The notes beneath the pieces were generated by a model that was given only the letters and a program-made list of their open reading frames with translations, made no database searches and had not been told where the DNA came from. From Dimorphilus gyrociliatus (lineage: Eukaryota > Animalia > Annelida), in assembly GCA_904063045.1 (NCBI GenBank), contig CAJFCJ010000002.1, forward strand, positions 2,723,891 through 2,787,890: a stretch of 64,000 bases of DNA, given 5' to 3'. The position numbers and the translations under genes are program-made. This document shows positions 10,291-33,500 of this stretch, in pieces (the stretch's first letter is position 1; each line of letters starts with the position of its first letter).

Positions 10291-12603
10291 CGATGAACAT
10301 GGAAAAACAAAGAAGAAGAAAAGTTTGCTATTATCTTCCGAATTCTTCATTTCTCTTCTTATTCTTCTACTTATTATGAACAATTCATTTTCTAGATTAA
10401 AGAATTTATTATTAAGATATTGATAATATTATTTAATTATAAAATTAAAAGAAAGCATTAACAAAATACCATAATACATAACATTCATACAATCTTGAAG
10501 ACAAGAAAGTTTCATTTATCACTTAAATAGCACGGAAAGATAAATAAATTACCCTTTATATAAAAATAATTAATGATAATTTTTTACGGTTGAAATAGCT
10601 AAGTTTACTTTGATTAAATCTTAATTCTAGACAATTTATAGCGGATTAAAAAAAAAGGTCATACTTTATATACAGTATTATTTCTTTGTTGTTGTATTTA
10701 TATACGTTAAACATCTATAGCATTATATATATATATATATACTTTATATATACACTATACAAGTATGTAAAAAAGATGTTTGTATATAGAATACTCATCA
10801 AACGGTAAAGGACTCTAAAAGAAATTAGTTAGAAACGGATAAGGAATTTTTGCCAATTTTTCTTTGTATTTTTTTCTAAGGTATATTGAAGATATTTTAA
10901 TATCCTTATTCTTCTTTGGCTTCTTCTTCTTTCTCTTTGACAGAATTCAGTTCTTAAAGGACAATGCTCAGAGAGAGAGAGAGAGTAATCTTGAAGGAAA
11001 CATTATAAAGGGATGAAAATATTAAAAAATATAATAGTTTAATGAATCTTTTCCAATTATCTCTTTAACATGTTCATCCTAATATCTATCCTATTCATAT
11101 ATGTATACAATACATAGTATAACTAAGTTTCGGTACTTTATCGGTATTGTAGGCTTAATTTTTCGTAAAATTAGTCATCTCCTAACGTAAAATATATTAG
11201 AAAGTTAGCTAAGAAATCATCACTTTCAGTTCACTTCTTTTTCCTTTCCTCTCGTCTATGTACTAAGAAATCTTTTGAATAGGGAATAAATCTTTGATGT
11301 CTAAAATGTCTACTCCTCTAACAACAAAGGCACAAAAGAAAATAGAATATTAGCAACAGGCTACTGATTAGAATAAATCTATTTATATTCATAATAAGTC
11401 AAATAATTCGTTTTGAATGTGTAATAAAAACTATAAAATATACTAATTAAATTTAATGGAAAAGAGCTCAATTTCCTTTAATAAACTTTGTATTTCATTC
11501 GTAATTACTAATATCTGTAGAAAGTCAATGAAAATGGCGGTGATTTTTAAATAATCCAATAGATAGCTTATTAAATATTTTACTAACTATATTGAAAACA
11601 ATATACATTCACAGAATATATATATATATATATAGGTCATAGAGTACTTTAACAAACGCCCTCTACCGTTTATTCAAAGTGTTTTAATGTTTAATAAACT
11701 AAGTCATTCAATTAGCGCATATAATGGACGGGTGCAATATTTTCATGAAATATTTAATAACAAGGAATGAAAACATTAGCCTTGAATAACTAATATTTAA
11801 ATGAAATAGTAATATATTTCGCTTTTTGTACTACTATGAAACAGAGAGATGAATAGAAAAAAAGAATAGGTTAATAGCTTTAAAAACATCAGAAAATGTA
11901 ACATAACACATAAAGAGATCGAACATATAACAAATATCAATTCGAAGTATTAATTTTGAATGAGATTTTAGTTAGAGAATAAAAGAGAGAGGAGAAAAGC
12001 AGCAATAGAGATGGGACTTTGAAAACCAAGTTTTTTTTTTATTAATATTTCTTTTCATATTAATTTATTACTCATATTTTGTTGTAGTTTGATGTTTCGA
12101 ATAGCGTTGAAACAACTTTATCTAAGTTTATTTGAAAGAATGAAACTATCTTTCAAGTATTGTTTGTTCATACCGAGAAGAATATAGGCTTGAATTTTAA
12201 TTATCTTCATTGAACATCTGTATTTACGAAACATTCACTTAAATGGTTGTGAATTCTGCTACAATTTTTTAAAAGTTTATATACATTTATTAGTATAGAT
12301 TGATTGATTTTAGTTATATTAGGCTTCCAGTTTAGTCCAAGTCGTAAAAATTTTTTAAATTAGGGATAATACTGCAACAGAGTATCAAAATACAGAGTAC
12401 TAATTTTCACAAAGTACTTTGCTCCGTCTAATGAAGGAAAACCAATATTATAACTTTTATACCTAATAACAAATATCTATTTAAGTTACATTTGCATAAA
12501 AACTACTGCATTATATATATTTACAAATATATATATGCATATGTATATATATATATATGTAAGTGAAAGTTGAATGAGTAAAGCTTAGTAATCTTCTCAC
12601 TTC

Positions 12604-15600
12604 ATGGCTGAGGTTCTCTACAGAAAAAATCCCATGTTTAAGCCTAAAGTAACTTTAAAATATACCATATATTATAAATTTCAATATTTTACATCTTATT
12701 ATTTTTTTTAGCAAGCCTGGAATGAGAAATCAAAGATATTTTCCTTTCCATTCCGACTGAACTCAAGGCTCCAGAAAGAGGATGATCATTATCAATATGA
12801 GACAAAATTTGGTCGATGTAAATCTGAAAGTAGTAAGTAAATTAATAAACAATTATAAATTGAAAATAGAAGTTTTTGATTTTCATTAAATTTTGCTTTC
12901 ATCTTTTAACTTTCTACTTTCAAAAATCAAATGAAAGAGAAGACAAGTTGGGATAAAACTTACGAATTTACCCAGGAAACGGCTTTTCACGGTGTGAAAT
13001 ATATAACAAGTGGACATAATATTTTCCGAAAGTATGTCTGATATTCTTATATCTCTGTTCAGAAGTGTTAATTCTAATCTATTCATATGTTTGTCTTGTT
13101 TGTCAACAAAAGGATATTTTGGGCGCTGTTCACATTTACTGCAGTTGCATTTTTCCTATATGTTCTTGGTCATAGGATAAAAACGTATAGAGCTTTTCCG
13201 AAAAGTGTAAACGTTGAAGTCGTTTACACAAATCGCCTCAGATTTCCAACTTTAACAATCTGCAATCAAAATTTCTTTAGGTATAAACATAGCAAACAAT
13301 TTAATAATACATAAAATAAACTTCTTCATCATTCATTCATTCTTTCTTTCAATCTTTCATAATGGAATTAAAGGACCACGAAGACTTTTGAAATGGGCTT
13401 ATTCGATAGAATTGAAGATGTTTTTGGAGGTTCTGAGGATTCAGGCATTTTATTAAAAGATTTTAATGAAGAAAGTTGCGAAGATAAGTTAATAAAAACA
13501 CCCAGAAAATACTTGAAAGGCTTCGAATCGTTATATAATAGTTTCAATGACGTCACTGAGAAAGTTTGTAAATCTTTGTGCCTTGATTTTGCGGATAAAA
13601 CTTGCAATTCTGTAACCTATAATTTAAAAACCAAAGTCTGTTATATAACACGAATAACGAAAGACACGGCTGGCTCCGTTTTAATCGACAGTAATGTGAC
13701 AAACTACTTTGAAAGAGAGAGATGCAATGGTAAGAACATTAGAATTTTGCTTTCATATTTTCAATAAAAAAGAAACGGTTGTTAAAGTATACTTTCGTTT
13801 TGAAAATAAGTCAGAAGGGGAGAAAGAGGTGTGCATAGAATGTTATATTCCATTACCAAAGGTTTACACAAGGTAGTATAAGAGATTCTGTGTTAATTTT
13901 TTATTATATATATATACAACTAATGATAAATAATAAATGAAAATATTCTGTGCATACATTTTTCAAACATTAAGTCTCGGGTTGATTAACAAAACTAAAA
14001 ACTACTATAATATATTAATTACAGGGGAAAAGAGTGCAGTATCTTGTAATTTTGATGATGATCAGGAGTTTTGTAAATTTTATCAAGATACCGATGACGA
14101 TTTTGACTGGGCAAGACATAAAGGGCAAACAGGAACTTTTAAAACGGGTCCAAGTGAAGATCATACAACGGGCAGAGGTTATTATATCTATGTTGAAGCA
14201 ACTAATAGAAAAGCTGGTCATTCAGCAAAGTTAATTTCTCCATTTCTACAAGCTCGAAAGAAAATTTGTATGGAATTTTATTACAAGTAAGATAAAGCTT
14301 TAGAATTTCTACTAACTAAATAGTTCGTTCTGTATTTCATTTAATTTTGCTTATGATCTTTCAAAAGCCTAATTTGATATGGTGAATAATTCACATCATG
14401 AATTACCTTTAGTTTTAAAAACATGAAATATAGTAAAATATTAAATACGGTCAGTTAAGCCATTAAGACAAAATGCATTCAATAGTTTAGAACAGCTAAC
14501 TTTTCCGCAAACACTTTATCCTTCTTTTCTTTATAAAATTTTTCGACTTTTAAGCGTCATCATCTGCTATTTATTCATATGTATTTCATTAATATTTTAG
14601 CATGTTTGGTGTTCAAGCTGGTCTATTAACGATTAAGCGGCGAGAAACCAATAAAGTGGAAAGTATTATTTGGTCTAGAACTGTTCCATCAGATACAACA
14701 GAATGGAGTAGAACTGTCGTTGAACTCCAACCTGGTCTTTTCCAAGTTGTTATTGAAGGCGTTATTGCGGATGGTCCTCTTGGTGATGTTGCTGTTGATG
14801 ACATTAGAATTGGAGATTGCAAAACAATACGTAAGCATATTTTTTATGCAATTGAGAAGATCTTATTTCAACATATCTTTAAATATTTAACTATGACGTT
14901 TTTCAGTTCCTGAATGTAAATACAACAAGTACGGTTCGGAGTTTCAGGGTTCTACATTTACATCAAGTAACACGAATAAATCATGCATCAAATGGACAGA
15001 AATGTTATCGGTTATAAATAAAACTGTGGTAAAAGAACGTTTCGAATTTCCAGGAACAAGTCTGGAAGAGGTTTTTATTCATCGTTCTTTTCATAAAAAC
15101 TTTCGATGTATATCTAAATCTTTCATTTTGAAGGCCGAAAACTATTGTCGAAATCCTAATCGAGATCCAAAAGGACCGTGGTGTTACGTTTCTACGGATG
15201 GTGAACGAGAGTATTGCGACATTCCCTTTTGCGGTACAAATTTATCATTAATCATTACTTTAACCAAATAGCATGATTCAAATTGAAACAATTCATCAAC
15301 AGCTTGTAAGAAAGATGATTTCTTATGCACAAACAATAATTGTATACCGAAGTACAAATTATGTAACGGCAAAGATGATTGTGGAGATAATTCCGATGAG
15401 GAAAAGACTTGCTGTACGAATATTTATTGCAAATTTAAACGACAATTTAAAATTCTTCTAATGTTTTGTAGCATCAAGCGCTAATTGCGATTTCGAGAAT
15501 ACTTTTGTATCTGGATATCGAAATAGAAACACTTCAACCAAAACCATTGAATGGAAAAGATTTAGAGGTTCTACGAAATCCAGTGGAAGTGGTTACAGCA

Positions 15601-18600
15601 ATTTAAGGTTTGATTACACTAAAAAATCCTCTCTGGGTCATTATATGTTGGTTGATTCGAGTGTGGCTGGACAACCAGTTGGCGAACTGGCACAGTTGCT
15701 TTCTCCAGTTATTAATGAAAATTCACAGCAAAATTGTTTAAGATTTTACTACTATATGTTCAATTTTCATGAAGATCCATCTAAAATGGGAAATCTAACA
15801 GTGAAGCTATACTTTAATGATTTAGACATTCGACCACTTTACCGTATTGTTGGCCGGCAACCAGATGGTTGGCAATCTGCTTGGGTTACAATTCCACAGA
15901 CAAATTTATCATACTCTCTTCTCTTCGAAGTAAAGATTGGAGAACAATTTACGTCCGATATTGCTATTGATGATATTAAATTAGATTTCGGGGAATCGTG
16001 TGAAGAATTGTTAAATATTCCTATTAAACCAGTGCCGCTCGATCCTGCAGAGTTTTTATGCAAATACGGAGATAAAATTAACAAAACGAAATTCTGTGAC
16101 GGAGTTGAGGATTGCCCAGACGGAAGTGATGAACTTCAAGACGAATGCATTCAGAGTGTGTAAACATAATTCTTGAATTATTTATATATATGTTTTGATA
16201 TTTTATAAAGGAAATAATGTATCCTGCATTTTTGACCATGATTATATGTGTGGATATAAAATTGAAGGTTTAAACCGAACTATGTGGCAAAAGAGCGAAT
16301 TAGTCATAGATGGCGGTAAGGTATCAGTTAGTGCCCATAGAGTTTAAAACATACAACCATTATCTGTTTTTAGTTAAGGAAAAGGTGATAGAGACTAGAC
16401 ATTTATTAAATTTTGGATTTGCGACTGAAGTAATTTCGCCAGTTTTTGAATTGAAGGAAAAAGGATGTTTGGAAATTAAAATTTATGTTAGATATTTGCG
16501 CAGTTTATTTTATAGATTTAGAGTTTACCAACAATATGAAAAATCGAGAAGACTATTATTAGAGTATGTTTGACAATAAGTTCAGCATTGAAACGTCTTA
16601 TGCATACCTATATGTAACTATGTTAATATATATTTTTTATATATTAGTTTGAATCCAGGAAACATGTTAGTAAAGAAATGGGATAAAGTATTAGTACCAG
16701 TACATCTGGGTAAAAGTAAAGTAGTGATTGTAAGACATTCACTTAATCCGTATCCATGGAAAGAATTTGGCGACTTTCTTGCTATAAAGGAAATACAACT
16801 CCATAATGAAAAATGTACAAGTGTTCGTAAGTATCTTATTGTTGACAAATGTTCAATATTTTATCATTTGTTAAGATATGGTCATTTTATAGATAAAAGT
16901 TGGGGAGGTTTCTCCAAAACATGTAAATTTAATTCTCCTGATCTTTGTGGATTTTCTCAAACTTATGATGATAATCATATTCGCTTCGCCTCAACCAAAT
17001 ATTATTTTGCGAGCGAAGGAATGGCTTCTCTAGCCCTAACAACCGATGTAACTGACATATTGAAACCTTATCGATTGATTTCACCCGAATTTAACATCAC
17101 AAAACCAAGTTGTTTTCAGTTCTGGTAAAAAAAAAAGTCAATTTTGTTTACTGTAAACTAAACCCCATTATAATTGAATCTTACAGGTTCCAATATAGTA
17201 CTATTCATTTAGATAAAAGCCAAGCCGCCAGGCAGTTTGCGGTTTATTGGGAGAGCAATGGAACAGAGGAAAAAATATGGAATATTAGTAAAAACGTACA
17301 ATTATACGGTACCAAATGGACAAAGGCAGAGTTGAAGGAAGGCTATGGTAGATTAATTTTTGAAGTTTTCGGAAAATTTCATTATAACTCAATAAATATT
17401 GTTAACTATACAATTACGGAAGGACACTGTCCACTGCCTGAAGGTACCTATATAATTACGTTAAAAATATCCTTTATCAATTTATTCATTAATTATATAG
17501 ACGTTTGCAAATCGACAAAGTACTGCTCGTCTGTTCCATATTGTATACAAAGCTATTTTTACTGTGATGGCATTCTAGACTGTCCAATGGAAGAAGATGA
17601 AAACAACTGTACTATTTGTGGGCATAGAAACACCAAATGGTGTCCAAAAAAAAAAGATGAGTTTTCAGGCTCAGGCTCATCGGGTGATAATGATCTCAAC
17701 TCTGGGTCAGGTTCAGGTTCAAACTCAGGTGGAAATGAAATACAGTCGGAATCAGGTTCAGGACTAGGATTAGGATTAGTATCAGGAGCAGGATCAGGAT
17801 CAGGATCAGGATCAGATTCAGGCTCAGGATCAGAACAGCGACTACAATTAAGATCAAAATCAGGATCAGAATCAGATTCTGAGCAGGATTCAAGCTCAAA
17901 TGAAAATGACTGGAAAAATCAAGACACATTTGACAATAATAATAAACTATCATTACCACAACTACCTGGTTTGTTCTTTACTGGAACTACAGGCTTAAAT
18001 GATAATCTTCAGGTAAATATATAAATTTTAAAAGTATCCATATAATCTAAGTAAATTATATTTAATGAAGTCCCAAAAACTCCTCTATTCTAATACATCC
18101 GATATTGAAATTGAAAGTTTAAAAATATGGGAAAAAATGAAAAATCAGACTATAGGAACAGTAGAATCAATAAGTATATTGCAATATTTTCAGTTCATTT
18201 ACAAACACACTTCCACTTAATTGTATCATTTGCATATTTAGCTGTAAACAATTTGAGAAGGTTTCATACAGATGCAGCACATGAAAAACAAAATCTCATA
18301 CATAAGTAAATCTATTTTCATTCTCTTAAATATCACTTATCAATAATTTCATCTACCATTTAAGATGTTCATGGGAAGGGGTTCCCTGCTCTCATTTAAA
18401 TTTTTCCTCTATTCTCACCGATTACGGTTATTGCCATACTTTCAACTGGAATGAAGACAACATACTAACAACAACAAAAACTGGTGAATTATCCAATACT
18501 TACACAAGCATTCTCCTTATCAAAAATAAATATTCATTAATTATTCAATATTTTTCATAGGTTCAAGTTCAGGATTGACTTTGATCTTAAATGTAGAAGA

Positions 18601-21038
18601 ATATGAATATATGAAAGGTCCGCAAAACGATGCTGGAGTTAAAATGTTTCTTCACAACGCAAATGAAGTTCCTTTCGTAAGAGATTTAGGTTTTGCAGCT
18701 GCTCCCGGTCTCCATTCACTCGTCTCTGTTCAGTATAGCGAGGTATTATCAAATATATGAAATCATATTTGTCTTGATTGAATACAAAACTCTATTCGCT
18801 ACAAATGTTTATAGAATGTTGGTTTACCGGATCCATGGGGCGTTTGTGGAACGAAACCATTAAAATATTTCCCAAAATATACTTATTCAGCTTGTGAGAG
18901 AGAATGTGAAACAGATGCAGTTGTGAAGCAATGCGGTTGCAGGAACTCTTTTATGCCACCGGAAGCTGATAGAAATCAAACGGTATATTGTACAACAGAC
19001 CAATATTTCAATTGCTTAGTTCATACAAGAGGTACTTTGGGATCGAATAAGAAAAACTGCAAATGCGTGGAGCCTTGTACAATAACGGGATATCAGTCTT
19101 CATTGTCTTATTCAGCAATATCATCTCTAAGTGTTGAAAAATTGTTGAGTATCAATACACAAACTCTGAAGAATAATTTTTATAAAGTAGAACATCTGAA
19201 ACAAAGAATTGCTGGTTCAAATTTTGTAAATGACTTGAAAATTTTAGAAAATGTTTTACATAGTTTTAATGCTCTGTACAAATATGCAAAAGTAAATACC
19301 TTATCGTATGAGAAGTCAATCTTCTATAAACTGAGAAGATGTATGGATAGGATGCTCTCAATCTATCGATCTGATATGGAACTGATATATCCTATTCTTA
19401 ATCAATATTACGATGCTTATGAAGAAGCTTATGGTACAAGTAGATTAGCCATGAAATCATCGTTTGAATCTATCCAAATTAAATCAGCTGCTGTTTTACA
19501 AAAAGCTCTAAACAGTTCAAAATACACTGATGTTAAGAATGATGAAATGATATCTTTAGTTGCCGAATATAATACCACAATTGATCTAATTGACCGCTTT
19601 CAGATTTATGTTGAAGAAAGAAAGTCTCCCTTTATTTTAAACGTAACGACAACTGATAAATTACCTCCAAAACAATATATCACTGAAAGTAGAGCTGAAC
19701 AGTGCGATGAATACAAAAAGAAAAATATTTTTCTAATAAATAGCATAATTCGTACCTTATCCCTTCTAGACGCAAAACAATTGAAATGGGAATTTAAAAG
19801 GGACTACTCCAGCCTTTCCAAAAACGGTAAAGAGTATATGGGCTGTTTAGAAGAATATTATTCAATTGTTAAACACTTTGGAGAATGGCAAGAAGAAAAA
19901 GAAAAAAGTATTAAAGCTTTACTGAGAGATGAAGGATTATTCCCGGAAATTCAAAATTTTGACTTTGAAGCAGAATGGGAAGAAATTGATTACGTGAAAG
20001 AAAAAGTACTTGATTTCATGGAAGAATATATGAAACATTCAACGAATAAACTCGATAACAAACACAATCTAGATTCTTCGATAATAAATCAAGCAATCAG
20101 CAATATTAATTCATTTATTCGTAAAATTCAAACTCGTCTTGTTGATACAATGAGAAACAAAGTTTCTGTGACTTCCCGTTCTATAAAAAGTGGCTATTCG
20201 GATGCTATCGAAAGAATCGAACGAATTTTTCCATATCAGAGTGAAAAGGGACGTGAAATTTTATCATCAATTTCGCAAAATCTGTCGATATGGTGGAGAC
20301 CGCGAGCAAACGTAGAAGAGCCATCGACGCCGTATCGAGGAGATCTCTATTTAAGTGTACATTACACTTTTGCATAGATAAGACAAGAATGAACATTCAT
20401 TTTTTGCAGATTCCAAGCAACTTGACGACGTTTCGCGAGAAATTGCTTGAAATTAATTTACAGGAAATCCTAGATGAATACTTTGCTCCTGTAAGAAGTT
20501 CTTTGGCTCATTTTGAAAACTTTATGTCTGATTTGGAAGCGAATTTAATTAAGCCATTACAACAATTATCAACTAGTATTAATGATTATATCATAAAAAC
20601 GAAGATAAATGAAAAGTTTGTTCTGTAAGTTGTTTAATGAATTGTATTCTCTTTTCTTTTTTATAGACGATTTTTCGATTTTACTGTCATATTAATAGAA
20701 CTAATTAAGAACTTTGTATGATTAAATTAGGGACAACTTTATTACTGTCGACGTCTTTTTTGCACAACTGAAATATCAAAAGATTGAACAACAAGTTGCG
20801 TATGATATAAGTAACTTCTTTAGTAAGTAGTTTTTATTAGGCTTTTATTATTTGCATAACATTTAATTTAACCTTTTATCAATGAATTATAGGCGAAGTG
20901 GGTGGTTTTCTTGGTCTTTTTCTTGGTGGGAGCGTTTTGAGTCTATTGGAATTATTTGATTTTATGCTTAACCTTCTAACCAGAAGATTGCATTTGAAAT
21001 CGTCGAAAGTTTCAGATTCTACTATCACGCTAAAATAA
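12604..21038 (+). CDS. Giant DEG/ENaC (amiloride-sensitive channel family) subunit, copy A, with PAN, 4 MAM, kringle and 3 LDLa modules; 25 coding exons, ~2,090 aa
   Basis: Exons 12604-12648, 12712-12832, 12938-13031, 13113-13280, 13374-13729, 14025-14286, 14601-14830, 14907-15070, 15134-15233, 15303-15413, 15472-16155, 16211-16315, 16374-16563, 16648-16826, 16893-17124, 17187-17443, 17501-18012, 18071-18173, 18242-18305, 18365-18483, 18561-18742, 18815-20356, 20410-20624, 20731-20822, 20893-21038 join in frame (6273 nt). Family motifs: pre-TM1 [13 protein letters not shown]; TM1 [18 protein letters not shown]; [13 protein letters not shown]; AAH; [20 protein letters not shown]; [13 protein letters not shown]; thumb Cys cluster; [24 protein letters not shown]; TM2 [20 protein letters not shown]. 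The acceptor at 12938 is weak; ATG 12931 is an alternative start. Confidence 0.9.
13374..18012 (+). other. Extracellular module array in copy A finger region: PAN/Apple, MAM, kringle, LDLa, MAM, LDLa, MAM (degenerate), MAM (degenerate), LDLa, Ser-Gly/acidic spacer (~1,130 aa)
   Basis: PAN: C..VCKSLC...[15 protein letters not shown]: [47 protein letters not shown]. Kringle with 6 Cys and NYCRNP..PWCY..YCDIPFC. LDLa: [33 protein letters not shown]. Confidence 0.88.
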
Positions 21039-22108
21039 CTATTGTCTATATATATATATTGTCTACATATACTTATTAATGTATTGTATGTATTAGTCAT
21101 TGTCAATAATAAATACAGGTTATTGAACTATTAACACGAAGACACCCAGATGCAAAGCAACATATTTGATATTGAGTGTGAATTTAAAGTATTGGAGCTT
21201 CCTATCAATTAGACTTGTAAATAATAGGGAAACGAACTAGTATTGTTAATTTTTGAAATAATGGACCTATTAATACTTTTAGAATTAAGTATAGTTATGC
21301 TACTGTACCGTATTTTAAATTATTCAAAAGATTATAATTCGATCCACTAAAAGGTTTCTATAAACAATATAACAACAGAAAAAGAAAAATTGTTATTATA
21401 AGTTTTGTCACGTTGTTCATGGTTTTCGTTGACCTTCCATAGCTATATAAAAAGATCATCCCTTCTTAATAAAAAAATGACGTAGTACTATTGATAAATA
21501 TAAAAGAGTTAAATAGAAAAAGAAAAGAATAGTGTAACAGGTAACAGCTCAAAAATTTATAATATCTATCAAACATTTATGAATAAAACTTTACTAATAC
21601 TCTTTAAAAATTATATTTTGTCATATGACTTTAATGAAATGGAACAACTTTATTCAATATAGAATGTTTTGTTTGTCAGTTTATTCTTAGCTCTCTGGAG
21701 ACAAACTTTTCTTTTATATCGAAGTTCACGGTAGGTAATTACGTTTTCGATGATTCACATATGGTGCATAGTTAGTGTTCAAGGGTTGATCATTCAGATC
21801 ATATCTATAGTAGACGCTTCATGTTTCTACGATACTGATTGCTGTTTACTAAACAGGTATTTAACCAATATTTTTCTCAATAAGTTTTTATAGAGTTAAT
21901 AGATGCATAATTTTTATTATTAACATATTCTGTTAGTTACAATTACAAATATATTTTATTTTACAAACGTTTACAGAGCAGAGAAGGGTTAGAGAGAACG
22001 TACATTCAGGAAAAGACACTTTATCAAAGAAAGAATAATCAACTTACTAATATTATGTATTAATTTCACTAAAAGCGAGATTCTAAGAAAATATACATAC
22101 ATATATAC

Positions 22109-22111
<3 letters not shown>

Positions 22112-22152
<41 letters not shown>
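22112..22152. repeat. (AT)n microsatellite just upstream of channel copy B
   Basis: Direct inspection. Confidence 0.95.
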
Positions 22153-22156
<4 letters not shown>

Positions 22157-22241
22157 TCTATAAATATAGGACACAGCATATATACCGAGTATTAATACTA
22201 AGAGAAGTTGAACAAGATAGATTTTCACATTTCTCATTTTG

Positions 22242-25200
22242 ATGGCCGATAGCAGTTTCAACAACGATTCCTTCTTTAAGCCAAAAGTAACATGGATTAA
22301 CTTGTTTTATATTACATATTGAAACTTTTTAATAAATAGTTTTATATTCGATTCTTATTCTTTCTTTCTTTATTTTCTACATTAATTCTACGTTTTGACT
22401 CTTTCTTTTAGAAGGCTTGAAAGGAAAAGACAAATATATTTTCTGCCCTTTTTCGACAGAGTACAATGGAACGTAAGAGGAGGCATACACAATGCTATGA
22501 AAGTAATAATACAGATTTTGATGGATGTAAATCTGAAAGTAGTAAGTAAATTAATAAACAATTATAAATTGAAAATAGAAGTTTTTGATTTTCATTAAAT
22601 TTTGCTTTCATCTTTTAACTTTCTACTTTCAAAAATCAAATGAAAGAGAAGACAAGTTGGGATAAAACTTACGAATTTACCCAGGAAACGGCTTTTCACG
22701 GTGTGAAATATATAACAAGTGGACATAATATTTTCCGAAAGTATGTCTGATATTCTTATATCTCTGTTCAGAAGTGTTAATTCTAATCTATTCATATGTT
22801 TGTCTTGTTTGTCAACAAAAGGATATTTTGGGCGCTGTTCACATTTACTGCAGTTGCATTTTTCCTATATGTTCTTGGTCATAGGATAAAAACGTATAGA
22901 GCTTTTCCGAAAAGTGTAAACGTTGAAGTCGTTTACACAAATCGCCTCAGATTTCCAACTTTAACAATCTGCAATCAAAATTTCTTTAGGTATAAACATA
23001 GCAAACAATTTAATAATACATAAAATAAACTTCTTCATCATTCATTCATTCTTTCTTTCAATCTTTCATAATGGAATTAAAGGACCACGAAGACTTTTGA
23101 AATGGGCTTATACGATAGGGTTGAGGATGTTTTTGGAGGTGTTGATAATACTGAATCTTCGAATGAAGAAGAAGGTAAGTAATAAAAATGATATATTCAC
23201 TTAAATAAAACATTTTACATATTTCTTATATTCAAAAAGAATGTCGGGATAATCTAATAAGACGGCCCCAAAAGTATCTAAAAGGCTTTGAATCCTTGTA
23301 TTTCTCTTTCAATGACGTCACTGAAAAAGTTTGCAAATCCTTGTGCTTGATATTTGCTGACAAGACTTGTAATGCGGTCACTTACAACTTAAAAACCAAG
23401 TCCTGTTACATAACGCCAATAACGAAAGATACAACTGGAGCACAATTAATTCATAGCAACGTGACAAATTATTATGAAAGAGAGAGATGTAATGGTAAGA
23501 CACATATTTCTATTTATCTCTTAGTCGACCTGTTTCTAAAAAATTAACTCATTGTTTGAGGAATAATTGTTTTAAAATAGACGCATGCAGAGACTATTAG
23601 ACTCTTAGAAGGAATCGTATAAATAAGTCAGAATATCTGAATGAATAATTAGTAGTCTACTGTTTCATTAGAAAACTTCTTAACAGTGATACTATCAGCT
23701 ATTCTATAATTTCTTAATTTCACCAACTTTAGGAGACAAACAACTAGTACAATGTGATTTTGATGAAGAGAGCAACAGCTTCTGTGAATTTTATCAAGAT
23801 GACAAAGATAATTTTGATTGGGCTAGACAAAAAGGAGAAACTGGTACATTTCACACTGGTCCTACTAAAGATCATACAACGGGCAGAGGTTATTATATCT
23901 ATGTTGAAGCAACTAATAGAAAAGCTGGTCAATCGGCAAAGTTAATTTCTCCATTTCTACAAGCTCGAAAGAAAATTTGTATGGAATTTTATTACAAGTA
24001 AGATTCAGTTATAACTTTTCTAAAAGAATATTACGAAATTGAAACTTTGTGTAGTATATATATTGTTACCATAAGTACATTCATATATAAATGAATAACT
24101 GATGACGATAAATATATTTATAGTCATTTCAAAAACACATTTTAACTAAATCTCTCTGAAATGAATATATAATATAAAATATTAAACATATTCCCTTATT
24201 GGTAATAAATATTGTTTAAAACCTTTTTCTCTATCTTAAATATTAATAAAAACTTTTGCAGTTTATTTTAATTTTCCTTTGCATGCTTCTGCTATTTATT
24301 CATATGTATTTCATTAATATTTTAGCATGTTTGGTGTTCAAGCTGGTCTATTAACGATTAAGCGGCGAGAAACCAATGAAATGGAAAGTATTATTTGGTC
24401 TAGAACTGTTCCATCAGATACAACAGAATGGAGTAGAACTGTCGTTGAACTCCAACCTGGTCTTTTCCAAGTTGTTATTGAAGGCGTTATTGCGGATGGT
24501 CCTCTTGGTGATGTTGCTGTTGATGACATTAGAATTGGAGATTGCAAAACAATACGTAAGCATATTTTTTATGCAATTGAGAAGATCTTATTTCAACATA
24601 TCTTTAAATATTTAACTATGACGTTTTTCAGTTCCTGAATGTAAATACAACAAGTATGGTTCGGAGTTTCAGGGTTCTACATTTACGTCAAGTAACACGA
24701 ATAAATCATGCACCAAATGGACAGAAATGTTATCGGTTATAAATAAAACTGTGGTAAAAGAACGTTTCGAATTTCCAGGAACAAGTCTGGAAGAGGTTTT
24801 TATTCATCGTTCTTTTCATAAAAACTTTCGATGTATATCTAAATCTTTCATTTTGAAGGCCGAAAACTATTGTCGAAATCCTAATCGAGATCCAAAAGGA
24901 CCGTGGTGTTACGTTTCTACGGATGGTGAACGAGAGTATTGCGACATTCCCTTTTGCGGTACAAATTTATCATTAATCATTACTTTAACCAAATAGCATG
25001 ATTCAAATTGAAACAATTCATCAACAGCTTGTAAGAAAGATGATTTCTTATGCACAAACAATAATTGTATACCGAAGTACAAATTATGTAACGGCAAAGA
25101 TGATTGTGGAGATAATTCCGATGAGGAAAAGACTTGCTGTACGAATATTTATTGCAAATTTAAACGACAATTTAAAATTCTTCTAATGTTTTGTAGCATC

Positions 25201-28200
25201 AAGCGCTAATTGCGATTTCGAGAATACTTTTGTATCTGGATATCGAAATAGAAACACTTCAACCAAAACCATTGAATGGAAAAGATTTAGAGGTTCTACG
25301 AAATCCAGTGGAAGTGGTTACAGCAATTTAAGGTTTGATTACACTAAAAAATCCTCTCTGGGTCATTATATGTTGGTTGATTCGAGTGTGGCTGGACAAC
25401 CAGTTGGCGAACTGGCACAGTTGCTTTCTCCAGTTATTAATGAAAATTCACAGCAAAATTGTTTAAGATTTTACTACTATATGTTCAATTTTCATGAAGA
25501 TCCATCTAAAATGGGAAATCTAACAGTGAAGCTATACTTTAATGATTTAGACATTCGACCACTTTACCGTATTGTTGGCCGGCAACCAGATGGTTGGCAA
25601 TCTGCTTGGGTTACAATTCCACAGACAAATTTATCATACTCTCTTCTCTTCGAAGTAAAGATTGGAGAACAATTTACGTCCGATATTGCTATTGATGATA
25701 TTAAATTAGATTTCGGGGAATCGTGTGAAGAATTGTTAGATATTCCTATTAAACCAGTGCCGCTCGATCCTACAGAGTTTTTATGCAAATACGGAGATAA
25801 AATTAACAAAACGAAATTCTGTGACGGAGTTGAGGATTGCCCAGACGGAAGTGATGAACTTCAAGACGAATGCATTCAAAGTGTGTAAACATAATTCTTG
25901 AATTATTTATATATATGTTTTGATATTTTAAAAAGGAAATAATGTATCCTGCATTTTTGACCATGATTATATGTGTGGATATAAAATTGAAGGTTTGAAA
26001 TATTCTAAATGGCATAAAACTTCCGTAATCGTTGACAAGAGTGAGTTTAAAAGTACTGAGTTTCATTTACACTTTTCTAAAAGTATTTTAATCCTCTCTC
26101 AGCTAAATATACTGCATTAAAAGGGGATAAGTTACTAAACGCTGGTTTCAACTCTGAAATTATTTCTCCAGTAGTTAATTTTTTCGAAAAAGGATGCATT
26201 GAAGTTGTACTGTATGTATTAAATTATTATGACGTTGGCAATCGATTTCAAGTTATTCAAAAATTTGAAACTTCTGAAAAGTTACTTTATGAGTAGGATA
26301 TTCTTAAAACTAATTATTTAATAATGTTTATTAAGTTATTCTGAAATATAGCGCCAAACCAGTGCTTTTATTATCGCAAACTTGGCGAAATTTATTAGTT
26401 CAAGTTTATCCTGGTAAGAGTCAGATCATTGTCAGAAGATTGTCAAAACTTAGTAATAGGTGGGGATGGCAATACAATTATTTGGCTATAAAGGAAATAA
26501 AATATCATAACAATTTGTGCAATGTTGTCAGTAAGTATCATATCTTTCGAATTTATTTTGTCGATTGACAGAAACAAACTTCAAAACAATTATTTATTAG
26601 AAAAAAGTTGGGGAGGTTTTTCTAAGTCATGTGAATTTGATTCTTCCGCTCTTTGTGGATTTGATCAAGATTATACTACTATTCACAGTCGTTTTTCCTA
26701 TTTAAAACCTACCTTTGTAACTGAATCAAAAGCCACTCTTCTTCTTCAGTCCGATATATACCGACTAAAGGATCCTTTTCGATTGACATCACCAGAGTTT
26801 AATGTGACAACAGCGAGCTGTTTACAATTCTGGTAAACTTAAATATGATGATATACAAATTGGAAATGAGGAAAATTTAATTTTTATAGGTTTAATTTTA
26901 ATTCAATCAACACTTATAAGTATGAGTCTGCAACATATCTTAATGTCTATTGGAAAGCTAATGGAACAGAGCAAAGACTTTGGCAAATTACTGGTAAAAT
27001 AGCCACACAGAGTTCTCAATGGACTGAAACAGAAATACCAATTGGTTTTGGCAGTATAATTTTTGAAGCACATGGTGTTTTTAACTCATATGCTCTATCT
27101 ATAAATCGATATAATATATCAGAAGGAAACTGTCCCAATCCCGAAGGTTAATCACATTTCTTTATAAAGAATAGTAACTAAAATATAATTCTTTTACAGA
27201 TGTCTGTAAAACAAAAACGTATTGCGTATCTGTACCGTACTGTGTACCCAATTATTTAGTTTGTGATGGTAAACAAGATTGCCCGGGTGGAGAAGAAGAA
27301 AAAAATTGTACACTTTGTTCTACAAACAATGATAAAAATTGCATTGAGAATAGTGGAGACAAAAAAGACGAAGACAACAATGAGGATGACAAAAATTCCG
27401 GTTCAGGAGAATCTGGTTTTGAAGAGTCAGGTTCAGGAGATGAAGAGTCAGGAGATGAAGACTGGAAAAACAAACAAAACGAAGACACTGCCGAAGAAAA
27501 GATTCTTGGAAAAAAAGTACATTATGGATTGTTCTTTACTGGAACTACAGGCTTAAATGATAGTATTCAGGTTAATAATTATTTTTTTAAATTATCCTTA
27601 TATTCTAAAAAAATTCTTTTAATCAAGTTCGCACTGAATATCCCTTATAATACATCCGATATTGAAATTGAAAGTTTAAAAATATGGGAAAAAATGAAAA
27701 ATCAGACTATAGGAACAGTAGAATCAATAAGTATATTGCAATATTTTCAGTTCATTTACAAACACACTTCCACTTAATTGTATCATTTGTCTATTTAGCT
27801 GTAAACAATTTGAGAAGGTTTCATACAGATGCAGCACATGAAAAACAAAATCTCATACATAAGTAAATCTATTTTCATTCTCTTAAACATCACTTATCAA
27901 TAATTTCATCTACCATTTAAGATGTTCATGGGAAGGGGTTCCCTGCTCTCATTTAAATTTTTCCTCTATTCTCACCGATTACGGTTATTGCCATACTTTC
28001 AACTGGAATGAAGACAACATACTAACAACAACAAAAACTGGTGAATTATCCAATACTTACAAAAACATTCACCTTATCAAAAATAAATATTCATTAATTA
28101 TTCAATATTTTTCATAGGTTCAAGTTCAGGATTGACTTTGATCTTAAATGTAGAAGAATATGAATATATGAAAGGTCCGCAAAACGATGCTGGAGTTAAA

Positions 28201-30595
28201 ATGTTTCTTCACAACGCAAATGAAGTTCCTTTCGTAAGAGATTTAGGTTTTGCAGCTGCTCCCGGTCTCCATTCACTCGTCTCTGTTCAGTATAGCGAGG
28301 TATTATCAAATATATGAAATCATATTTGTCTTGATTGAATACAAAACTCTATTCGCTACAAATGTTTATAGAATGTTGGTTTACCGGATCCATGGGGCGT
28401 TTGTGGAACGAAACCATTAAAATATTTCCCAAAATATACTTATTCAGCTTGTGAGAGAGAATGTGAAACAGATGCAGTTGTGAAGCAATGCGGTTGCAGG
28501 AACTCTTTTATGCCACCGGAAGCTGATAGAAATCAAACGGTATATTGTACAACAGACCAATATTTCAATTGCTTAGTTCATATGAGAGGTACTTTGGGAT
28601 CGAATAAGAAAAGTTGCAAATGCGTGGAGCCTTGTACAATAACGGGATATCAGTCTTCATTGTCTTATTCAGCAATATCATCTCTAAGTGTTGAAAAATT
28701 GTTGAGTATCAATACACAAACTCTGAAGAATAATTTTTATAAAGTAGAACATCTGAAACAAAGAATTGCTGGTTCAAATTTTGTAAATGACTTGAAAATT
28801 TTAGAAAATGTTTTACATAGTTTTAATGCTCTGTACAAATATGCAAAAGTAAATACCTTATCGTATGAGAAGTCAATCTTCTATAAACTGAGAAGATGTA
28901 TGGATAGGATGCTCTCAATCTATCAATCTGATATGGAACTGATATATCCTATTCTTAATCAATATTACGATGCTTATGAAGAAGCTTATGGTACAAGTAG
29001 ATTAGCCATGAAATCATCGTTTGAATCTATCCAAATTAAATCAGCTGCTGTTTTACAAAAAGCTCTAGACAGTACAGAAAGCACTGATGTTAAGAATGAT
29101 GAAATGATCTCTTTAGTTGCCGAATATAATGCCACAATTGATCTAATTGACCGCTTTCAGAATTATGTTGAAGAAAGAAAGTCTCCCTTTATTTTAAACG
29201 TAACGACAACTGATAAATTACCTCCAAAACAATATATCACTGAAAGTAGAGCTGAACAGTGCGATGAATACAAAAAGAAAAATATTTTACTATTAAATAG
29301 CATAATTCGTACCTTATCCCTTCTAGATACAAAACAATTGAAATGGGAATTTAAAAGAGACTACTCCACCCTTTCCAAAAACGGTAGAAAGTATATGGGC
29401 TGTTTAGAAGAATATTATTCAATTGTTAAACACTTTGGAGAATGGCAAGAAGAAAAAGAAAAAAGTATTAAAGCTTTACTGAGAGATGAAGGATTATTCC
29501 CGGAAATTCAAAATTTTGACTTTGAAGCAGAATGGGAAGAAATTGATTACGTGAAAGAAAAAGTACTTGATTTCATGGAAGAATATATGAAACATTCAAC
29601 GAATAAACTCGATAACAAACACAATCTAGATTCTTCGATAATAAATCAAGCAATCAGCAATATTAATTCATTTATTCGTAAAATTCAAACTCGTCTTGTT
29701 GATACAATGAGAAACAAAGTTTCTGTGACTTCCCGTTCTATAAAAACTGGCTATTCGGATGCTATCGAAAGAATCGAACGAATTTTTCCATATCAGAGTG
29801 GAAAGGGACGTGAAATTTTATCATCAATTTCGCAAAATCTGTCGATATGGTGGAGACCGCGAGCAAACGTAGAAGAGCCATCAACGCCGTATCGAGGAGA
29901 TCTCTATTTAAGAGTAAATTACACTTTTGCATAGATAAGACAAGAATGAACATTCATTTTTTGCAGATTCCAAGCAACTTGACGACGTTTCGCGAGAAAT
30001 TGCTTGAAATTAATTTACAGGAAATCCTAGATGAATACTTTGCTCCTGTAAGAAGTTCTTTGGCTCATTTTGAAAACTTTATGTCTGATTTGGAAGCGAA
30101 TTTAATTAAGCCATTACAACAATTATCAACTAGTATTAATGATTATATCATAAAAACGAAGATAAATGAAAAGTTTGTTCTGTAAGTTGTTTAATGAATT
30201 GTATTCTCTTTTCTTTTTTATAGACGATTTTTCGATTTTACTGTCATATTAATAGAACTAATTAAGAACTTTGTATGATTAAATTAGGGACAACTTTATT
30301 ACTGTCGACGTCTTTTTTGCACAACTGAAATATCAAAAGATTGAACAACAAGTTGCGTATGATATAAGTAACTTCTTTAGTAAGTAGTTTTTATTAGGCT
30401 TTTATTATTTGCATAACATTTAATTTAACCTTTTATCAATGAATTATAGGCGAAGTGGGTGGTTTTCTTGGTCTTTTTCTTGGTGGAAGCGTTTTGAGTC
30501 TATTGGAATTATTTGATTTTATGCTTAACCTTTTAACTAGAAAATTTGATATGAAATCATCTAAAGTGTCAGATTCTGTTATTTCTTTGAAATAG
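22242..30595 (+). CDS. Giant DEG/ENaC subunit, copy B (tandem paralog, same module architecture)
   Basis: Same exon series as copy A, with offsets 9709, 9725 and 9557 in shared tracts. First exon [15 protein letters not shown] (22242-22286) matches A's [15 protein letters not shown]. Extra intron 23175-23239. Diverged exons stay open with conserved Cys and splice phases. Ends [17 protein letters not shown]-stop. In-frame TGA at 22418-22420 if the first acceptor is used; downstream ATG at 22466. Confidence 0.85.
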
Positions 30596-33500
30596 AAAGT
30601 GAGTAATATTTTGAAGATTGTGAATGGGAAGGAAAAAGTTTGGTTTTTTCAGCTGCCTCTGACGTAATTGTTGTGAAGTTATTGACTTTTAAAGTTTGCA
30701 CTACTGCGTCAATATTCATCTTCTCTTTTTAAATTAGTTTAATTAAGTGGGAGCGAAATGCAATATACAGAGAAATAACGAGAAAGAAAGTGTATTCGTT
30801 TGTTTAAAGCTTTTTTTTATGAATACAACACGTTTGAATATCTCTATTTTTAGTTTTGTGTATAGTTTTAATTAGTTTTAAATAAAGTAGGCTGTTAATG
30901 CAAGACTATGCAAAATCTAATTAGTTTGATTGACTCTTTCTATCTTTGAGTGAAATTGTTTTAAATCCTTTACTTTAGAGATCTCTTAGGAGCAATCCAC
31001 TAGATGGAGTATTACTGAGCTTACTCGTATTTCCTATTTTCATTTGATAATGGAAGGAAGAATAGTTTTATCTTTCAAACGAAGTCGTTAAGTTATTTCT
31101 ATTTATATAAATATACTATGTTGCTTACTATCAAATATATTTACTAATATATATATATATATATCTATATATAATATATACATGTATATACATATATACT
31201 ATGTATGTATGCTTATATAGAGATGATATTTATTCTTCTAATTGACCTTTTACTTACTCTTCTCTTCTTTTTCTTACTATTTTTCCTCTTTGTTAGGGAT
31301 AAATCATCCGTATAAAACGCCATCTGTATTGAAAATATACTATATTTTATTATACTATGATTCAATACTTTCATAAAATAGTTCATTTGAAACTGTTTTT
31401 ACCCCAACTAATCCTTATTATTTCTAAAAGAAAGGGAGAGAAAAAAAGAATGAATTATTAATATAAATTTGATTTTTTATTCAATCGTTAACGGTTTTCT
31501 CGAGTAATAAAAAAACATTTCTCGGATAATTTTCTGCAAATAAAGACCCTACTTTTTTTCCCTTTCCCTTTTAAAGACTGTTATCCTTTTTAAAAGGAGA
31601 GAGACGAGCACAGTTTAATTTTTGACAAAGTTGACAATCATAGCCCTAATTCCAATGAACTTTGGATGACTAATCCTCAATGGGAACTCTTTATCGTACT
31701 CTCCTGAACGAATTTTAAGGAGTAATGGTCAATGATACCGACTTGATTAAATCTCTCTAGTGACCGTACGCTTTTTTTTTGACAAACCTTTCTTTGACAA
31801 CTTTATTGTAAAAGGAAAACAAAGACAAATCAATATTTGCCAAGTTTACTAGGAATATCTAAATTTAAAAAATCTTTTGTTGCCAATAGGCTTATATTTA
31901 AGTTATTATTATCATTATTTTAATAATTTTAAGTTATTCCTTAGTGCATATTTCACTTCCTGGGGGTTTTTTCCCTGCATTTAATCAAGACACTTTATCT
32001 AGTTTTTCCCCTCATATCTATTGTTTTATCGATAGGGTTTACCTTCGTACAGATTAGCTAATCAATGTATTTGTTGTAGTGCCAATATATGTGTTTACAC
32101 TAAAGCTTTAAGGGCTTAGAAGATCATGAAAAAAAAATTGAAAAAAGCTTTTCCACTAATATTTTAGGTATTAAAAGAAAGGTTTTATAAATTAATATTA
32201 AATTGAATATAGTGAATAAAGGAAAATAAGCATATTTTTAATTATCTTTTTACTACGAATGATAAATCTATTTATACTTAGTTAATTTATTTAGAAAACA
32301 ATATGGCAGGTGATTTAAAACAGCACTTTTCATCAATTTGATTTTATCTCTCCAGTATACATACCCATGTTATTAGTTAGCGGCTATATTTACCTAAACA
32401 AAATCGCTTTAGTTTATATGCAAAGAACTACAAGAAAGAAAGATATCTAAGGTAATTTTTTAATTCTTTTTTTTACCTTTCTCACTCCCCCTCCCATTCC
32501 CGCCCCCTTCTAAACATTTATCAATCTATTTACTATCTGTTTTCTCTCTTATTTTTTCACTTTTCAACGCGTTTATCTTGTTATCATATTAAATCAATAT
32601 ATTTGATCAATATAAGTATCGATATACCTTATAAAATTTTTATATTACTCGTAAAAACACCCGTGCAAACGTTGTACATTTGTTATTCATTCTCCTATAA
32701 CTTTTGCCTGGAAGGTTTCATAATCAAGATTACAATTTTTTTTTGCTAGCTGCATAAATAGTACTCTGAGATGCTGGTTGGAAAAAAAAAAGAAGAGAGT
32801 AGGCCTATATGTTTTAAACACCATTCCTCTTTAGCCAAGTAATCCAATATCTTTATGTACTAGGGGTAGAGTATATTTTTTAGGGAATGTTTGATTAATT
32901 TAATCCTCTTTAATTGTTGAACGGTGTTGGAGTACCTTGATCTATATACAGTTTATTTCTTAATATACCATTATTTCTGCCTTTGTTAACGTCAAAAACG
33001 TTTTAAAGTAAATCGAAGACAAGCTTTTCTTTTTTGTCGAAGGTTTACGGACACTGCGTTTATACGACCTTGCTGAAATTTGAAACGTTTTCGATTGATT
33101 AGGTTCTAGGCGGGATTTCCACAGATGTATAAAGTATGAGATTTTGTCGATATTTATTACAACGAAAATGACTTGGTTAACCCGATTAGCTGTACTATAA
33201 ATACCGAAGATTATTTTAAGATACTTTTTCAGTTATATTAACCGAATGGGTGTGAGTATAAGAGAGAAATTGTTTATCTAAATAATAAAGGAATTTTACG
33301 AGCGATAATTTAAGCATGCAACTGCTGGCTAATCTTTTGCTGGACTATTGACTAACAATAAAAGTCAGTGAGGTATTCTTACGAACAATTTAATTGCTCT
33401 ATTAATTCCGGTTTCTAAAACATATTGTATTCTATAAAAGCAATCTAATAACATCAATATAGTTAATAGGAGAGAGAAAATAATTTTAGATAGAATTTCA

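Follow-up and report, generated by a model that had tools for sequence, protein, structure and literature searches.

Genes at the locus

The two genes described here, copies A and B, are giant members of the DEG/ENaC channel family (Pfam ASC) that lie in tandem in the genome of the annelid Dimorphilus gyrociliatus and alternate along their length between stretches that are nearly identical in the two copies and stretches that are strongly diverged. They were studied in a window of 64,000 nucleotides (nt), positions 2,723,891 to 2,787,890 of the forward strand of contig CAJFCJ010000002.1 (assembly GCA_904063045.1); all positions below are those of this window. The window is AT-rich (∼30% GC) and contains no N. 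Copy A occupies 12931-21038 and copy B 22640-30595, both on the + strand and 9.7 kb apart from start to start. The spacer between them (21039-22523, 26% GC) has no relation to the DNA upstream of A or to that downstream of B, (TA)n runs excepted.

Gene models were built as an automatic exon chain and then corrected by hand from three-frame views and from comparison of A, B and a paralog on another contig, C186. The model predicted for A has 22 exons and encodes 2058 amino acids (aa); that for B has the same architecture, with 23 exons and 2005 aa. Neither contains an internal stop codon, all introns are GT-AG, and the splice phases are identical throughout. Most introns of the models measure 53–106 nt, which fits the median of 66 bp published for the assembly of this species (PMC7854359). 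The intron found only in B (23175-23239, + strand, 65 nt, phase 1) splits the PAN exon at a site inside a diverged block, where A is uninterrupted (13374-13729). The C186 paralog has a phase-1 intron at the same codon (∼14790-14890, minus strand), and so the intron was lost in copy A. A further intron of B, 57 nt long (27571-27627), keeps the reading frame and has no stop codon. Its donor, GTTAAT, is weak, and retention of this intron would add 19 residues; the counterpart in A (18013-18070) is 58 nt long with a GTAAAT donor.

Pfam was run exon by exon on both copies. Each encodes, in order, an N-terminus with the HG motif, the first transmembrane segment (TM1), PAN, MAM1, kringle, LDLa1, MAM2, LDLa2, MAM-like 3, MAM-like 4, LDLa3, a Ser/Gly linker, the ASC finger, palm and thumb, an insert of ∼490 aa, and TM2. 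MAM1 extends across two exons, MAM2 is accompanied by an LDLa match, the ASC core occupies three exons, and TM2 gives a separate ASC match. ASC (PF00858) scores of the exons are 51.5, 37.0, 41.5 and 71.1 bits against a cut-off of 23.6, the TM2 exon alone reaching 20.6. The FHG motif in exon 1 and the GGS pore motif in the TM2 exon are identical in A and B. Bit scores in B and in A, respectively, are 34.0 and 32.8 for the PAN exon, 77.7 and 78.8 for the N-terminal half of MAM1, and 26.8 and 24.4 for LDLa3. Half-domain exons of MAM-like 4 reach 13.9–15.3 bits each in A and B, taken singly against the PF00629 gathering score of 26.4. MAM-like 3, at 158 aa the size of a MAM domain, has no match in the exon-by-exon scan and is weakly similar to MAM1 and MAM2 of its own protein; the same scan gave no match for the ∼490-aa insert between thumb and TM2. 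In A (17640-17960) the linker that follows LDLa3 forms a long stretch rich in Ser and Gly; in B (27340-27520) it is shorter and rich in Glu/Asp, a difference of 141 nt within one exon.

Near-identical tracts

Tracts were mapped by self-BLASTN together with a global alignment of A 12600-21300 with B 22300-30900 scored in 100-column windows, and synonymous (dS) and nonsynonymous (dN) divergence were computed by the method of Nei and Gojobori. Four tracts, all on the + strand, are 98.5–100% identical between A and B with introns included, at dS values of 0–0.04; 45 differences are fixed across the four together. The original prediction had pointed to near base-identity, introns included, over the HG/TM1 exons, from the C-terminal half of MAM1 to LDLa2, and over the palm, thumb and TM2, and these three tracts were reproduced. 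The fourth, T1b, is an addition to it.

T1 (A 12815-13402, B 22524-23111) has no mismatch in 588 bp (dS 0) and covers 116 bp upstream of the ATG, exons 1 and 2, introns 1 and 2 and the opening 10 codons of exon 3; identity then decays across A 13403-13431. T1b (A 14157-14293, B 23868-24004; 2 mismatches in 137 bp, dS 0.04) comprises the final 44 codons of exon 4 and 7 nt of intron 4. T2 (A 14563-16274, B 24288-25999; 10 mismatches in 1712 bp, dS 0.014) runs from the final 38 nt of intron 4 through the C-terminal half of MAM1, kringle, LDLa1, MAM2 and LDLa2 to 21 codons into exon 9, with introns 5–8 at 98–100% identity. T3 (A 18091-20975, B 27648-30532; 33 mismatches in 2885 bp, no indels, dS 0.014) extends from codon 8 of exon 15 through TM2, taking in the ASC core and the ∼490-aa insert.

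Identity between the copies is unbroken for as much as 1025 bp; when the differences were permuted 2000 times no run exceeded 76 bp, which places the pattern far beyond chance. Differences within T3 are mostly nonsynonymous and fall in the insert (dN/dS 0.76–0.9), and they are unevenly placed: two clusters, at A 19511-19605 and 19732-19832 (B positions are higher by 9557), each carry 8 differences per ∼100 bp (scan P = 0.002). The cluster differences, likewise mostly nonsynonymous and within the Pfam-less insert, may mark conversion patches of greater age, or else selection that is relaxed or positive.

Tract edges fall inside exons 3, 4, 9, 15 and 22 and inside intron 4, not at exon borders. 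The 3′ edge of T1 lies 10–19 codons into exon 3. T1b is bounded by a point in the middle of exon 4 and by another 7 nt past the start of intron 4, and T2 by a point 38 nt short of exon 5 and another 21 codons into exon 9. T3 begins at codon 8 of exon 15, where the copies pass from one residue in common among codons 1–7 to 100% identity, and ends within the last exon, past TM2. Edges that ignore exon borders in this way indicate recombination tracts, and the mid-exon and mid-intron positions rule out exon shuffling as the source of the mosaic. The tract lengths (588, 137, 1712 and 2885 bp) are within the usual range for gene conversion tracts, 0.1 to a few kb.

Diverged blocks

Strong divergence over PAN and the N-terminal half of MAM1, and again from MAM3 to the spacer that follows LDLa3, had also been reported in the original prediction, whose coordinates proved right to within a few bases; the non-homologous interior of intron 4, the diverged last 20 codons and 3′ flank, and the extra intron of B are found here in addition. 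All the blocks are on the + strand. The first (D1; A 13403-14156, B 23112-23867) takes in the PAN exon, intron 3 and the 5′ half of the exon for the N-terminal part of MAM1. Its dS is 0.90 and its dN/dS 0.20; taken separately, the PAN exon has a dS of 1.6 and the 5′ half of exon 4 a dS of 0.94, with dN/dS values for the parts of 0.11–0.3. The second (D2; A 16275-18090, B 26000-27647) comprises the rest of MAM-like 3, MAM-like 4, LDLa3, the linker and codons 1–7 of exon 15. Here the proteins are 36–45% identical, dS is ∼1.5 or more with several exons saturated, dN is 0.49 and dN/dS 0.33.

The diverged exons of B had been said to keep their reading frames, cysteines and splice phases, and they do so: all 9 cysteines of D1 and all 14 of D2 align between A and B (23/23), and Pfam matches to PAN, MAM and LDLa are retained alongside the GT-AG introns and shared phases described above.

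Intron 4 is 314 nt long in A and 328 nt in B. Its interior of ∼270 nt (A 14294-14562, B 24005-24287) has no detectable A/B homology on either strand, with near-identical tracts on both sides, and a search of the window and of the paralog loci for an inverted, shifted or repeated copy of it found none. At the end of the genes, the last 20 codons, the C-terminal tail (A 20976-21038, B 30533-30595), have a dS of 1.36, and the 3′ flanks beyond are unalignable. At the other end, 5′ of the identical 116-bp leader, a weak residual similarity of ∼60–75% can be seen between A 12700-12800 and B 22400-22500, from which it follows that the old duplication unit reached ∼230 bp or more 5′ of the ATG. Beyond −116, A and B have different promoters.

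Silent sites and introns give the contrast between tracts and blocks most directly. Synonymous differences number ∼10.5 among 838 sites in the tracts, whereas the diverged blocks have ∼235 among 384 (Fisher P ∼5e-132). The eleven whole introns inside tracts are 96–100% identical, and introns 3, 4 and 9–13 show an A/B identity of 0.58–0.68, as against 0.55–0.62 for shuffled sequence.

Relatives and age of the duplication

The 77.9-Mb assembly (349 contigs) was searched at the DNA level with A and with B, and no other copy above ∼80% identity was found in it. The next paralog, on contig C186, is 68–76% identical in DNA to A and B in its best exons; other family members lie on C64, C12 and C45.

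Trees of different segments disagree, placing A and B as near-identical in exon 19 and as deeply split in D2. For D2, C186 and C64 form a clade (support 100/100) with A and B outside it on long separate branches (0.91 and 0.56), their position relative to C12 being unresolved in this tree. The protein distance between A and B in this block, 1.47 substitutions per site, amounts to some two thirds of that between A and C186 (∼2.2), and protein identity to C186 is 38–39% for A and 32–44% for B. In exon 19, by comparison, A and B are separated by ∼0.035 substitutions per site, with C186 and a sequence from another organism (P0001) outside.

That sequence is one of three open reading frames in Logan assemblies, P0001 to P0003, that belong to one or more other organisms and are not encoded in the D. 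gyrociliatus assembly. P0001 and P0002 were obtained by a word search with exon 19, and P0003 (71 aa) by an HMMER search with exons 11–12; a second HMMER match to these exons was rejected as a spurious bacterial-type protein. Word searches with D2 exons 13–14 and 11–12 gave no matches in other organisms. Across exon 19, A and B are 96% identical, with P0001 at 56% and P0002 at 43%; across exon 12, A and B are 53% identical to each other, and A is 47% and B 41% identical to P0003. P0001 to P0003 are probably orthologs or co-orthologs in related worms. If they come from one related lineage, the unconverted parts of A and B would be about as diverged from each other as orthologs between species.

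Diverged-block dS values of 0.9 to more than 1.5, intron identity at the level of shuffled sequence and the distance of 1.47 in D2 together make the A/B duplication, as judged from the sequences, an old one, in agreement with the original prediction. An unlikely possibility, linked to the idea of a selected partition discussed below, is that it predates the split from the organism of P0001 and P0002, P0002 then being the ortholog of the copy that was overwritten at exon 19 here.

Self-comparison of the C186, C64, C45 and C12 loci yielded family fragments, and no second clear conversion mosaic was found among them. C186 has a 1.5-kb inverted repeat (21182-22671 against 18218-16697, 96.7% identity), and C45 has, at ∼133866-134750, exon fragments with 84–90% identity to the paralog on C64, perhaps from a family member that is partial or has decayed.

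Probable interlocus gene conversion and alternative explanations

Tracts that include silent sites and introns and that end in the middle of exons are the signature of conversion between two loci. We infer, with a probability of about 0.8, that A and B are genuine tandem paralogs, derived from a duplication of the whole gene long ago and homogenised in tracts by interlocus gene conversion; several tracts of this kind, introns included and with mid-exon ends, bear out the recent conversion that had been proposed. An old tandem duplication of the whole gene would have given A and B, and repeated non-allelic conversion, in which one copy is repaired on the other as template, would since have kept the four stretches of 0.14–2.9 kb near-identical. 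At least three or four separate events would be needed, because the intervening sequence is too diverged to pair. Uneven divergence among the tracts, together with the two clusters in T3, fits several events of different ages. Homogenisation has most likely been continuous since the duplication, not a late re-homogenisation, since sequences 35–60% identical cannot initiate conversion.

The PAN and MAM1 N-half region, the interior of intron 4, the stretch from MAM3 through MAM4 and LDLa3 to the linker, the C-terminal tail and the flanks would have escaped conversion long ago, and would since have diverged at the usual rate of the family under purifying selection. The heterology of these blocks would now halt conversion tracts and so produce the knife-sharp edges seen in mid-exon. 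Candidate stoppers are the intron lost in A, the intron 4 interior, which is unrelated in the two copies, and the Ser/Gly linker with its variable length.

Several points weigh against this account. GC content at third codon positions is 0.28 in the tracts and 0.25–0.275 in the diverged blocks, so that the signature of GC-biased conversion is absent. Polarising the exon-19 differences with P0001, P0002 and C186 as outgroups was uninformative, the sites being too variable, and the direction of conversion could not be read from them. The conversion model accounts only in outline for the full divergence of the intron 4 interior, which has an identical tract on either side. The gene models of both copies are themselves predicted from sequence alone. 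Finally, the published assembly was made from PacBio RS II reads self-corrected with PBcR, polished with Quiver and with Pilon (101-bp reads), and processed with HaploMerger2 (PMC7854359); correction and polishing can erase small differences between paralogs, and the true divergence of the tracts may be somewhat above the 0–1.1% recorded here.

The same pipeline, along with the perfectly identical runs of 500–1025 bp, could be taken to mean that the loci are real and their near-identity an artefact, exaggerated or manufactured when read correction or short-read polishing pasted one paralog over the other. We regard this as improbable. The 45 fixed differences within tracts show that A and B were resolved as separate sequences in assembly, and neither gaps nor N occur in the window. 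Each tract, at 0.14–2.9 kb, is anchored in unique diverged sequence, and the read library was size-selected at ≥5 kb (PMC7854359). Correction moreover merges only sequences that are a few percent apart, and cannot turn 50–60% identity into 99%.

Alternating identical and diverged tracts would also be expected if the history were reversed, that is, if a recent duplication of the whole gene (dS ∼0.01) had been followed by import of the diverged blocks, through conversion, from a third, diverged paralog that has been lost or is unassembled. The family does have further members, on C186, C64, C12 and C45. Against this, no such donor is present in the 77.9-Mb assembly, both A and B fall outside the C186 and C64 clade in D2, and a separate import would be needed for each of five diverged blocks, among them the intron 4 interior and both the upstream and the 3′ flank. 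Gene conversion also has homology requirements, which a donor only 50–75% identical is unlikely to satisfy. This course of events seems to us very improbable.

That A and B might be alleles, not tandem loci, was raised in the original prediction, and the need for HaploMerger2 in making the assembly (PMC7854359) gives the idea some footing: two very divergent alleles of one locus would have been laid in tandem falsely. Alleles, however, would share flanks, and the spacer matches neither the upstream sequence of A nor the downstream sequence of B, (TA)n runs excepted; the sequence is continuous, without a single N; and saturated silent sites and the presence or absence of an intron far exceed allelic variation. 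The chance that A and B are alleles is remote, and they are best treated as tandem loci.

Strong purifying selection on conserved parts, without any conversion, is a negligible prospect even though no part of the family is better conserved than the channel core (66–78% identity to C186), since identity in the tracts embraces synonymous sites and eleven whole introns (96–100%), which selection at the protein level cannot account for, and since the tracts include the fastest-evolving modules of the family, only 35–38% identical to C186.

The mosaic and channel function

It had been proposed that conversion homogenises the pore and assembly parts while the outer modules diversify. The first part stands to the extent that the core is homogenised; the correspondence is otherwise loose. 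Of ∼1365 homogenised codons, ∼400 belong to the canonical channel core (T1, the ASC part of T3, and TM2), ∼470 (∼35%) to outer modules like in kind to those that have diverged (the C-terminal half of MAM1, kringle, LDLa1, MAM2 and LDLa2) and ∼490 (∼36%) to the Pfam-less insert. Identity to C186 is 38% for the homogenised outer modules and 35% for the insert, which places both with the least conserved stretches of the protein; the unconverted PAN and MAM1 N-half, at ∼70%, are among the most conserved. Fast-evolving parts have thus been homogenised and a conserved block left unconverted, which shows that conversion does not simply track constraint.

Nor did we find any indication, from coding-sequence comparison, of adaptive diversification in the diverged blocks: dN/dS is 0.20 in D1 and 0.33 in D2, and their divergence equals the family background. 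The outer modules have diverged at background rate under this measure, and the claim that they are diversifying is not borne out.

The channel cores of A and B differ at ∼3 residues (∼99% identity), which makes it plausible that the two subunits co-assemble and sense different cues. One could go further and suppose that the partition itself is maintained by selection, conversion being favoured or tolerated where the subunits are interchangeable (the pore, the trimer interface and the shared modules) and purged in PAN/MAM1-N and in MAM3-MAM4-LDLa3. Were that so, a single locus would yield heterotrimeric giant channels with two different ligand or tether arrays. We consider such maintenance unlikely; pre-existing heterology acting as a tract stopper is a simpler reading and fits the sharp edges.

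The pair offers a teaching-grade example of partial concerted evolution, with a roughly hundred-fold contrast in silent divergence inside one pair of genes and edges sharp to the base pair. It also calls for caution in phylogenies and dN/dS scans, as whole-gene trees of this channel family would misdate the duplication, and only within the diverged blocks can A be distinguished from B by probes, primers or reads. If both copies are expressed, they would constitute a natural swap experiment, in which the same pore is combined with different PAN/MAM1-N and MAM3-MAM4-LDLa3 arrays, for probing the role of the module arrays.

Comparison with known systems

As channel genes, A and B share with the ASICs, FaNaCs and degenerins the FHG motif before TM1, the ASC domain over TM1, palm, thumb and TM2, a pore motif of the GxS type and a cysteine-rich ectodomain. 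They differ in carrying, within that ectodomain, a PAN/MAM/kringle/LDLa array of ∼1150 aa and a second insert of ∼490 aa. A limited full-text search of the literature on annelid ENaC channels gave no paper with a MAM-domain term.

As a probable product of recombination, the pair is a new and unusually clean case of a well-known process in an unusual gene. Classic cases of interlocus conversion are the human gamma-globin genes HBG1/HBG2, RHD/RHCE and the red and green opsins. In theory developed by Innan, and by Teshima and Innan, a segment that has passed a homology threshold reportedly stops converting, whereupon its divergence becomes self-sustaining while its neighbours stay homogenised. 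Such escape is said often to invoke selection for divergence; A and B depart from the model in this respect, as their diverged blocks, with dN/dS values of 0.2–0.33 and background-like divergence, give no positive evidence of such selection.

Mosaic divergence through interlocus conversion in tandem paralogs has been described for the three tandem HMA4 copies of Arabidopsis halleri (bioRxiv 10.1101/2025.10.29.685298). Systems of that type resemble the present locus in being tandem direct repeats in which near-identical tracts, introns included, alternate with diverged stretches; in both, effective conversion varies along the gene and the diverged regions escape further conversion. The two channel genes are set apart from these systems by the extreme contrast, from a dS of ∼0.01 to saturation within a single pair, and by tracts that cut through a multi-module channel subunit of 2000 aa.

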